Source: Orbicella franksi (lineage: Eukaryota). Taken from it: a DNA stretch of 64,000 nt. The notes below the pieces were generated by a model, which made no database searches, was not told the DNA's origin, and saw only the letters and a program-made list of their open reading frames with translations. The position numbers were made by a program, and so were the translations under genes. Of the stretch, positions 41,701 through 43,994 are shown one piece after another (the first letter of the stretch is position 1; every line of letters begins with the position of its first letter). Location: the NCBI GenBank assembly GCA_964199315.1, contig OZ116704.1, forward strand, positions 3,720,001 through 3,784,000, written 5' to 3'.

Positions 41701-41996
41701 TAAGTTTTGATGTTTTATCAGAAAACTAGAATGAGCAGAGATGAGCAAATACGCCTCAGGTTGGCTTTGAAGCCTTCGAGCTCTGATTGGTTTGGAAGGC
41801 CATTCATTTGAAAACCGCCTTACGTTGTCGCACGCGCGATGGTACGTCTAAAGAATCTTAGTGTAATGCTGTTCTGATGTGAAGTTTATATGAAATAATT
41901 CATATATGAACTGCAGTTGTAGATGAGAGTGAAGAATGATCATCGCAGTTAATTTTCCAATTTAAGCAATTGGAAAGAAGAAGCCTGAAAAAATCA

Positions 41997-42030
<34 letters not shown>

Positions 42031-42325
42031 GATACCGGTGCGATGCTCTACCAACTGAGCTATGAAGCCACACATTGGGAGCGAGGTCAATTAATTGAGT
42101 TCATATCAATTAATTGAGTTCATTCTTCTTTCCAATTGCTTAAATTGGAAAATTAACTGCGATGATCATTCTTCACTCTCATCTACAACCGCAGTTCATA
42201 TATGAATTATTTCATATAAACTTCACATCATTTCACTCCTCACGGGAAGATATGAACTCAATTAATTGACCTCGCTCCCAATGTGTGGCTTCATAGCTCA
42301 GTTGGTAGAGCATCGCACCGGTATC

Positions 42326-42359
<34 letters not shown>

Positions 42360-43994
42360 TGATTTTTTCAGGCTTCTTCTTTCCAATTGCTTAAATTGGA
42401 AAATTAACTGCGATGATCATTCTTCACTCTTAATGCTGTTCTCTTATTATCTATGCTACTCACTATCTATTGTACTTTAGTATAAATCTACTAGCGTTCT
42501 ATCACGAATGCCGTTCTCTGATTGGCTACACTACTCACTATCTATTCTGTGACAGATATTGAGTAGCGTAGCAGCGTGTGCTTGTTAGAAAAATGACGGC
42601 CGATTCTTGGCGTTTTCGATGTGGCTGTGAAGAGGATTTAGATAAAGTTTTGAACGATTAGTAGATTTATACTAAAACAATTAGATTATTTGCTCTGAAT
42701 TTCTACGCGTGATAGAAATCTCGACCTCATAATCTAATTGCTAAGTAGATAGTGAGTAGCGTAGCAGCGCCCGGTTGTTAACAAAGGGGGGCCGGAGCTT
42801 CCTAGCTTTTACCGAAGTGTCTGTGAAGAGGATTTCGATAACGTTTGATTGACCGTGAGTAGTTTTAAACTAAACCAATTAGATCATTCGCTCTCGATTT
42901 CAATGCGTGATCGGTTGACTCAGGTTACACCTTCATCAACTATCACACGATAGAAATCTCGTGCTTATAATCTAATTGTTAAATAGAACCTGTTAATTAA
43001 AAGCCCACAATACATTCACACTTACTGTCTTCGAGCGTTGTTCCTCCTATTGGAAAACTCGCAACTCCTTCTCCTACACGAGTAAACGCTACGACTCTGA
43101 CTCTGTATGATGTAAACTTACGAAGCCCTGTCAGAGTTACATTCCTCTCATCCGGTTTCGTGACAGTCCGATTGAAGACTTGATCCGGGTTCTTTGTGCT
43201 GAAGTAATACACTCTATAGCCCAGAAGTTTACCGTTGATTGCGTTCGACGGCGGCTTACTCCACGTAACCTCCATGCTTTGCGAGCTAAGCACTGTTATT
43301 TTGACCGAGTGGGGAGGCTGACTGGGAACTAGGGATAGAAAAAAAAAGTCAAAAATGTTGAATGAAAGATTTCCTCGCGTTACTTAGTACATACAGTACT
43401 CGAATCAAGCCGGTTTCTGTAGCATGAGAAGCTAATTCCCTCAAGATCTCAATTGGCTTTGATTGATACGATCATTATCAAGATTAAACAACTAATCTGT
43501 TAATGCATCACAGTGTGAATGATTTCCTAAAACAGTGAACCTACCGTCTTCATGTGTGACCACTTCCTCTTGTGCCTTTCCTTTTGGGCTTACCCCAGCC
43601 CGTGTAAACGCCTGAATTTCTATGGTGTATGCTTTGTAAGGATCAAGGTTACCGATGACATAACTCCTTTTATCGCCTCCTCTCACTGTTAAGTTTTTTC
43701 CTCTGTAGATCTTGTTCCTTTGTTCGTAAAGCACAAAGTATCCTCGAATCACGCCATTTCTGCTTGATACGGGAGGAGGCTATACAAAATAAATGAGAGA
43801 TTTAATTATAACCGTATTGAACTTTTAGAAAGGCATAAGCACAGGTATCCTTTTCCATTGATCAGAGGCTGCTCTAAGATTGTTCGTGTCCGCGGAAAAA
43901 GTTGAATAGAAACTACAGACATGTCAAAACCTTGAAACCTAAACGAACATTTGTTCATCTTATTAACAGAAATGGTGCTTCTATCCCCAAACAA

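Follow-up and report, generated by a model that had tools for sequence, protein, structure and literature searches.

A tRNA-like gene in the hammerhead position of a young, probably Penelope-dependent retroelement family of a stony coral

A 64,000-nucleotide stretch of the Orbicella franksi genome (contig OZ116704.1, positions 3,720,001 to 3,784,000 of the forward strand), referred to here as the window, contains a 555-bp insert that was delimited by self-comparison of the window and is bracketed by a 12-bp direct repeat, TAATGCTGTTCT. The insert is composed of direct and inverted copies of a short unit with a tRNA-like gene, and about 1,900 near-exact units were present in the genome that was searched, a 497-Mb stony-coral assembly. 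The joint explanation that best accounts for the evidence, and that we consider very probable, is a young, high-copy, noncoding retroelement that is mobilized by the reverse transcriptase (RT) and endonuclease of Penelope-like elements (PLEs) and has a selected tRNA-like module in the position of the ribozyme.

The layout of the insert agreed with an earlier interpretation made from the letters alone (the sequence-only reading), which had described a 12-bp target-site duplication (TSD), a 251-bp unit present as about 1.2 direct copies plus an inverted copy with one mismatch, and a duplication at the junction. The unit period of 251 nt was apparent from an exact 57-nt direct repeat (42123-42179 and 42374-42430), and the plus-strand arm (42123-42430) amounted to 1.23 copies of the unit. 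The reverse complement of the unit occupied 233 nt (41875-42107) and matched the plus-strand arm over 182 nt at 100% identity and over 108 nt at 99% identity (one mismatch). An 18-nt duplication (42087-42104 and 42106-42123) was located at the arm junction. The left arm ended at unit position 108 and was tailed, and the right arm ended at position 57. The features of the insert, in which the first or last base of the TSD is ambiguous with the element end, were as follows:

41864-41875, no strand: left copy of the TSD, TAATGCTGTTCT, a direct repeat; the final base could also be the element end
41876-42107, minus strand: inverted arm, unit positions 127->251->108, delimited from the inverted repeats; the inner end is 5'-truncated, and the outer 3' end is the "long" end at about position 108, with a tail
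41876-41925, minus strand: tail, unit positions 58-108, between both RT start sites and at the outer end of the inverted arm only (tail as defined in PMC8557442 and PMC11167929)
41988-41993, minus strand: T6 run (A6 on the plus strand), 3 nt past the tRNA-like gene of the inverted arm, matching an RNA polymerase III (Pol III) terminator
41997-42069, minus strand: tRNA-like gene of the inverted arm, Thr-GGT (ARAGORN; Rfam tRNA, 62.3 bits)
42108-42122, no strand: 15-nt junction filler between the arms, within a 19-nt slip-duplication around the palindrome TCAATTAATTGA
42123-42430, plus strand: direct arm, unit positions 1-251 plus 1-57, delimited from the direct repeat; the outer 3' end is the "short" end at about position 57, without a tail
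42129-42151, plus strand: stem-loop SL1 (9-bp stem, loop GCUUA), found again at 42380-42402 and inverted at 41954-41976, and covarying in sister families
42162-42269, plus strand: mini-open reading frame (mini-ORF) of 35 codons, with its ATG inside the invariant motif AACTGCGATGATC, crossing both RT start sites
42287-42359, plus strand: tRNA-like gene with intact A box TAGCTCAGTTGG and B box GGTTCGAATCC (ARAGORN, Thr-GGT; Rfam tRNA, 62.3 bits), with C33 rather than U33 and a 31-39 mismatch
42363-42368, plus strand: T6 run, 3 nt past the tRNA-like gene and in the loop of the hairpin CCTGA/TCAGG; the only run of four or more Ts on the sense strand of the unit
42431-42442, no strand: right copy of the TSD, a direct repeat

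The copy in the window was one of a large family. BLAST searches with the unit returned 201 matches at 95-100% identity that were spread over all large contigs, and a 31-mer spanning the T arm, the acceptor strand, and the T-run had 1,942 matches with at most one mismatch, compared to 0 for the reversed control. Divergence from the consensus was 0.2-1.8% per site across 43 full units, and the window copy differed from the consensus at two positions, one of them polymorphic. Thus, both the family and the window copy are young. All sampled words of the unit were present in contigs of 20 public sequencing runs, 9 of which are recorded as RNA; their organism labels are five coded ones and "coral metagenome." Because the unit recurs about 1,900 times with the same layout, a chance origin of the arrangement in the window is excluded. 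The genome-wide search extended what the sequence-only reading had seen in a single copy: the unit was of high copy number, and the same tandem and inverted layout and TSDs recurred. Long arrays of consecutive units were also observed at C2:17610170-17613417 (at least 13 copies), C12:16624528-16626657 (at least 9), and C145:20782-21890 (at least 5), and these are candidate source loci for multi-unit transcripts.

Insertion anatomy was resolved by mapping arms against the consensus in 24 nonredundant genome loci and in 120 coral-metagenome contigs that had been retrieved with a 24-nt pattern. The typical insertion, as seen in 51 two-armed cases, consisted of two head-to-head arms, each of which was a 5'-truncated tandem run ranging from a fraction of a unit to eight units, often with at least one full unit before the truncation point, so that both outer ends are 3' ends of the element. 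The outer ends fell into two classes, a short class ending in ...CTTCACTTTCA (mode, unit position 59) and a long class ending in ...CTTCACATCA (mode, position 108), and the tail between them was 49-50 nt. One short and one long end were found in 30 of 40 complete two-armed insertions (examples are L005:1145-2312, L022:891-2360, L156:4958-5331, and the window copy at 41876-42430), and neither two short ends nor two long ends occurred in any (0 of each). The other 10 insertions had at least one end that could not be classified, mostly due to subfamily divergence or deletions. The TSDs of the 30 short-plus-long insertions were mostly 9-15 bp (range, 5-17; none was found in 2), with a mode of 13 bp when the 1-3 bases assignable to either the TSD or the element are counted. 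The inner junction was unique to each insertion, with 1-13 nt of overlap or microhomology or a few filler bases, and was often palindromic, involving the hairpin around the T-run, the acceptor stem, or TCAATTAATTGA. At many insertions 1-3 junction bases were common to the TSD and the element end, often ...CA for long ends and A for short ends, which hints at minimal primer-template pairing.

These features closely parallel published descriptions of PLE insertions, in which partial tandems adjoin an inverted copy truncated at its 5' end and only one end has a tail, of 30-40 bp (PMC8557442). In Adineta vaga, PLE insertions have a 9-bp TSD, their tail extends the ORF-start remnant, and the inverted junction contains palindromes (PMC3846280). 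Purified Anolis PLE protein cuts and extends both DNA strands, beginning reverse transcription at two neighboring internal positions of the RNA, and the tail corresponds to the interval between these positions (PMC11167929). Tandem and inverted copies with a tail on one side only, here 49 nt long, are the published mark of PLE integration, and by this comparison the family can, with high confidence, be regarded as a PLE-dependent nonautonomous element; since the unit is noncoding, it must be mobilized in trans. The sequence-only reading had proposed both a Penelope-like architecture and mobilization in trans of a nonautonomous element, and both proposals held: insertions had tandem and inverted 5'-truncated copies and TSDs of about 9-15 bp, and a one-sided tail was found in 30/30 classifiable insertions. 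PLE machinery is abundant in the genome, with more than 1,000 candidate GIY-YIG matches. In one region (C10:19.27-19.78 Mb) a cluster of about 12 GIY-YIG matches on alternating strands, with frames of 337-412 amino acids and regular spacing, looks like a tandemly amplified block of PLE copies or a PLE-derived gene family.

If the PLE protein acts as the Anolis enzyme does in vitro, integration might begin with nicking of both DNA strands by this protein. Both strands would then be extended, with reverse transcription beginning at two adjacent internal RNA sites, one per strand, and the protein may recognize stem-loop SL1 and the AACUGCGAUGAUC region of the RNA. SL1 covaries among the sister families described below, and its GCUUA loop is invariant. 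The longest ORF of the unit was 35-42 codons, no ORF for an RT or a GIY-YIG endonuclease was found in it, and open frames at 150 unit copies did not exceed 98 amino acids. The statement of the sequence-only reading that the element has no ORF is thus correct for large ORFs and needs amendment for the mini-ORF of 35 codons at 42162-42269. The ATG of this mini-ORF lies in the invariant motif AACTGCGATGATC, and its frame runs across both RT start sites. It is possibly a remnant of the start of a PLE ORF, in analogy with the ORF start found in PLE pseudo-long terminal repeats (pseudo-LTRs; PMC3846280, PMC11167929). Immediately 3' of the long RT start site, at window 42215-42238 (unit positions 93-116), a TATAAA box is followed about 15 nt later by TCACT; TCACT is the same initiator-like motif that was noted in the pseudo-LTRs of A. 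vaga PLEs, and the two motifs together are a possible RNA polymerase II core promoter of the unit.

The anatomy of the insertions also bears on whether the repeat is a retroelement at all. Inverted and tandem repeats are easily misassembled, as has been noted for PLEs (PMC8557442), and a short CTTCAC motif common to the two outer ends might be taken for a weak terminal inverted repeat. We therefore considered an assembly artifact, as well as the spread of a satellite or fold-back DNA repeat through recombination or by a DNA transposase. However, more than 40 loci scattered over many chromosomes, and metagenome contigs from independent assemblies, had the same layout, and RNA sequencing (RNA-seq) reads contained both opposite-strand and unit-unit joints. 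Furthermore, the TSD, the inner junction, and the number of units differed from copy to copy, which fits independent 5'-truncated cDNAs and not the cut-and-paste movement of a fixed element. It seems extremely unlikely that either an artifact or a DNA repeat explains the family.

The possibility that the family is an ordinary tRNA-derived short interspersed element (SINE), transcribed by Pol III from its tRNA head and mobilized by a long interspersed element (LINE), with the tandem and inverted layout arising secondarily, has only slightly more to recommend it and is very improbable. In its favor, both the A box and the B box are intact, the 9-15-bp TSDs would also fit target-primed reverse transcription by a LINE, and tens of thousands of "tRNA" repeats are listed in coral genome papers without further analysis (PMC12005156). 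However, the tRNA-like part is internal rather than at the 5' end of the copies, the T6 terminator directly follows it, and all insertions were tandem and/or inverted. There was no poly(A), A-rich, microsatellite, or LINE-related 3' tail; instead, the 3' ends were the fixed internal sites ...CTTCACTTTCA and ...CTTCACATCA, strictly one of each per insertion. With internal tRNA, fixed internal ends, and no LINE-like tail, mobilization of the LINE type does not fit. In addition, 37 nt upstream of the tRNA are coconserved in a distant relative (family C), and therefore sequence 5' of the Pol III start is retrotransposed.

The tRNA-like gene that the sequence-only reading had recognized was confirmed in both arms. 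ARAGORN called Thr-GGT for each, and the Rfam tRNA score was 62.3 bits for each arm against a threshold of 29. With its upstream leader, A and B boxes, and T6 terminator, the module is, as judged from its sequence, a tRNA-Thr-derived gene of the Pol III type. The T-run lies after a 3-nt gap in the loop of a small hairpin and was T6, but T7 in 40% of RNA-seq reads. The module is not a normal decoding tRNA: C32-C33 and an unpaired 31-39 were found in all four families compared (A, the window family, and its relatives B, B2, and C), whereas U33 and a paired stem are canonical. Its anticodon, GGU, differs from that of the usual Thr isoacceptor in eukaryotes. At L068:1721-1805, a coral tRNA-Thr(CGT) gene that has an intron and appears genuine shares 15 identical T-arm nucleotides with the element, which is weak sequence support for derivation of the tRNA-like part from a host tRNA-Thr gene. 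A variant tRNA 3' half that was recovered from reads of another coral sample had no exact match in the genome.

Comparison with diverged sister families, which were present in the metagenome contigs as well as in the genome, indicated that the module is maintained. Family B, for which 597 matches of its own 31-mer were found in the genome, was about 76% identical to family A overall, with 89% identity in the tRNA-like part and about 72%, with indels, elsewhere. A complete family B insertion (L156:4958-5331) had inverted arms flanked by a 12-bp TSD, with its short and long ends at homologous positions, and the family was also seen at L008:2190-2400. Families A and B have the same order of modules, which was also kept in more distant relatives that were each sighted once (C at L076:2300-2480, D at L134:8100-8400, and E at L135:10950-11160). 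Rfam tRNA scores were 60.9 bits for family B and 37 bits for family C. The A and B boxes, C32-C33, the 31-39 mismatch, and an upstream leader of about 37 nt were kept in all families, and a run of at least six Ts (T6-T9) was located 3-10 nt past the tRNA-like gene in all sister families.

Cloverleaf pairing across families A, B, B2, and C was 91.7%, with 7 of 21 pairs changed on both sides, compared to 27-49% pairing for slid-partner controls from the same families. The covariation score was 0.484, versus 0.292 for shuffles, and none of 500 shuffles (0/500) reached it. The stems of A and B differ in seven cases, all of which remain paired, and in two of these both partners have changed in compensation at the consensus level. 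At pair 6-67, where the A-to-B change is compensatory at the consensus level, G6 was present in 87/100 B-type copies among the matches listed, and C67 lies inside the 31-mer of B. The acceptor stem of family C is almost wholly different and is nevertheless paired. Because the cloverleaf was kept through compensatory changes in sister families, the tRNA-like part is, on this comparative evidence, a selected component rather than a decaying passenger, and selection is not confined to the promoter boxes but extends to the RNA fold with its acceptor and anticodon stems.

A host tRNA-Thr gene that was captured once with its terminator, by PLE template switching or read-through, and has no function would account for some of the same observations. 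Host sequences are known to travel with PLEs, including, in trans, genes that contain introns (PMC8557442, PMC3846280). The module resembles a copy of a genomic gene in that it has a T6 terminator and lacks CCA, and neither cDNA ends nor reads bore a signature of processing or of a promoter. However, a functionless passenger would not be expected to be the best-conserved part of the unit between A and B, to keep pairing at every one of the A/B stem differences and in the nearly replaced acceptor stem of family C, or to retain its T-run and leader in all families. We therefore consider a passenger improbable, and the preferred explanation remains a PLE-mobilized element with a selected module.

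Additional pairing was noted around the T-run. The 3' strand of the acceptor can pair with a second GGCTTC past the T-run, forming a 9-bp hairpin with the U-run in its loop (unit 231-251 plus 1-4; window 42353-42377), and in families B and C different sequences also form a hairpin that encloses the T-run. These alternative hairpins suggest that RNA continues through the "terminator."

Within the unit, the tRNA-like module immediately precedes the ORF-start remnant and the RT start sites, and canonical PLEs and animal retrozymes have the hammerhead at this position. No hammerhead or other ribozyme family was detected on either strand in an Rfam scan of the insert at E values of ≤10, and the hammerhead core CUGANGA was absent from both strands of the consensus dimer. 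A hidden ribozyme was rejected on the basis of these empty searches, in agreement with the sequence-only reading, in which no ribozyme was visible. The canonical hammerhead loci of the genome (L061-L066) had no sequence in common with the unit.

Several observations weigh against a PLE-mobilized element with the tRNA-like module at work in the ribozyme position. The tail is 49-50 nt, versus the usual 30-40, and the Anolis PLE in vitro had no strand preference between start sites (PMC11167929), whereas here there is strictly one of each. The RT start sites are 73 and 122 nt past the conserved T6-T9 terminator that follows the tRNA-like gene, so that an ordinary Pol III transcript would end before reaching them. 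The tRNA-like part was also retained in every copied unit, which indicates that the template is not cut on both of its sides. The 152 mapped 5' truncation points were scattered over the unit, with no reproducible peak at the borders of the tRNA. At the tRNA 5' end there were 5 truncations in the genome sample versus 1.5 expected (P = 0.018, post hoc) and 3 versus 3.9 expected in the metagenome sample, which is biased by its search pattern.

Expression data were similarly unfavorable: in polyadenylated [poly(A)] RNA-seq, which is unable to show small nonpolyadenylated RNAs, signal per copy was low, was even on both strands, and lacked discrete starts or ends. Coverage of the unit was even, at about 190x summed over all copies, and equal in both directions, with about 15x in the flank; equal coverage of the two directions reflects the presence of both orientations within insertions. 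Many reads ran from the short or long ends into various flanks, and joints between opposite strands were also present. Multi-unit sense RNA exists, and the unit-unit joint was crossed by 63 reads; reads of this kind would be expected from tandem DNA as well as from circular RNA of unit length.

The search for an autonomous partner added further points of the same kind. No autonomous PLE with sequence in common with the unit was found at the loci sampled: blastn detected no similarity between the unit and 30 loci drawn from the more than 1,000 GIY-YIG candidates, and the invariant motif never preceded a long ORF in the 0.8 Mb of DNA examined, in which only noncoding relatives were found. The linkage to PLE RT ORFs that the sequence-only reading had envisaged was thus not observed at these loci or after this motif. 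The ends of the PLE family at the GIY-YIG loci compared differ from the ends of the unit. A peptide search with the mini-ORF matched about 2,500 copies, in all of which the open frame was 98 amino acids or shorter, and ORFs of at least 250 amino acids in the 120 metagenome contigs were not adjacent PLE genes (no Pfam scan was made).

Two roles that the sequence-only reading had assigned to the tRNA mimic, as the Pol III promoter of the template and as a site of cutting by RNase P or RNase Z in place of a ribozyme, were therefore left without support, though not refuted, the former in view of the T6-T9 terminator ahead of the RT start sites and the latter in view of the module's retention in copied units and the lack of a border peak. 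Three further candidate observations were discarded. A proposed design for Pol III read-through, based on the lack of any other T4+ run on the sense strand, was not significant, because 15% of shuffles likewise had none. An apparent hotspot of arms "starting at position 1 plus filler" was a BLAST artifact, and these arms begin in the hairpin/T-run region. Insertions ending at the T-run, as expected for copies of Pol III-terminated RNA, were rare or reflected subfamily divergence.

Because the tRNA-like gene occupies the hammerhead position of PLE pseudo-LTRs, a role in cis is favored, tentatively and at somewhat less than even chances: the tRNA-like fold might act in the template or precursor RNA in place of the ribozyme, as a handle for processing, stability, or protein recruitment. 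The second-ranked possibility, which is doubtful by itself and compatible with a role in cis, is that the Pol III promoter of the module keeps source copies expressed. A joint proposal, which we put forward only as tentatively as the role in cis, is that a PLE-dependent lineage swapped its hammerhead for a complete tRNA-like Pol III gene whose fold serves as an RNase P/Z signal or as a handle for a protein or the ribosome, and that the rule of one short and one long end reports how a dimeric PLE enzyme divides the start sites between the strands. If this were true, the family would be a third kind of retroelement derived from a small-RNA gene, beside LINE-dependent SINEs and TRIMp3 elements of the LTR type.

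The family has affinities with several known systems. Similarities to PLEs (canonical EN+ as well as Naiad/Chlamys) include partial tandems with pseudo-LTR logic, an inverted 5'-truncated copy, a TSD of about 9-15 bp, a tail at one end between two internal RT start sites, palindromes or microhomology at the inverted junction, and an ORF-start remnant over the start sites. Unlike PLEs, the coral element has a 251-nt noncoding unit with no RT/GIY-YIG ORF and no hammerhead, a tail of 49-50 nt, and a tRNA-like Pol III gene. Small tandem noncoding units (170-400 nt), low GC content, presence in RNA, and PLE-type scars are shared with animal non-LTR retrozymes (Cervera & de la Pena 2020; Li et al. 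2026 preprint), which are regarded as nonautonomous derivatives of PLEs; hammerhead retrozymes are PLE dependent (PMC7229834; preprint 10.64898/2026.07.22.740005). However, their defining feature, the type I hammerhead, is absent from both strands of the coral unit, and the tRNA-like gene is in the equivalent position.

Ribozyme-less nonautonomous elements have been described among Chlamys elements (PMC8557442). Like the coral family, such elements, for example MRC1 of Chlamydomonas (Craig et al. 2021), are noncoding and PLE dependent, with pseudo-LTRs and head-to-tail multicopy insertions. In contrast to the coral family, they share 3' ends with identified autonomous families, and no small-RNA gene has been reported in them. 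tRNA-derived SINEs resemble the coral element in being nonautonomous and in having tRNA-derived sequence with intact A and B boxes, but the coral tRNA is internal, its cloverleaf covaries, a terminator follows it, integration is of the PLE type, and there is no LINE tail.

TRIMp3 elements (Cassandra with 5S, Helenus with a tRNA-like gene, and Ajax; Kojima 2024) are LTR-type elements with 5S or tRNA-like genes in their LTRs (PMC10886601). They are comparable in that a small-RNA gene of the Pol III type, with conserved promoter and terminator, is located in a terminal-repeat unit and mobilization is not by LINEs. They differ in having true LTRs, a primer-binding site and polypurine tract, and the 4-5-bp TSDs of an integrase, and the coral family would be the PLE counterpart of the TRIMp3 idea. 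A tRNA-like fold in a longer transcript, for which cutting by RNase P/Z is conceivable, is also found in the MALAT1 mascRNA type. However, the Rfam mascRNA score was only 16.9 bits versus a threshold of 42.5, and cDNA 5' ends of the coral family gave no reproducible sign of cutting. No description of a PLE-type element built around a tRNA-like gene was found in the literature searched (Repbase and Dfam were outside the search), and it is plausible that the element is undescribed.

The sequence into which the window copy was inserted is itself repetitive. In the right flank (window 42432-43000), units about 196-238 bp long are 82-88% identical, and several inverted repeats contain the motif TAGATAGTGAGTAGCGTAGCAGCG. 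A copy of the target site (42432-42471) at 85% identity is located at 42507-42546. The element was probably inserted into a MITE-like or satellite cluster to which it is unrelated.

In some coral species more than 20,000 "tRNA" repeats are merely tabulated in genome papers (PMC12005156), and families such as this one probably account for part of these repeats and for inflated tRNA counts. PLEs are the least understood class of eukaryotic retroelements, and the role of the ribozyme in PLEs and retrozymes is not yet settled. Hundreds of young, independent insertions can be used to read the mechanism of PLE integration. The presence of one tailed and one untailed end in 30/30 insertions is sharper than the published description, "often at one end," and has not been seen in vitro. 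A lineage with the full PLE signature and a selected tRNA-like gene offers a comparison for what the ribozyme position must provide, whether processing, expression, or recruitment.

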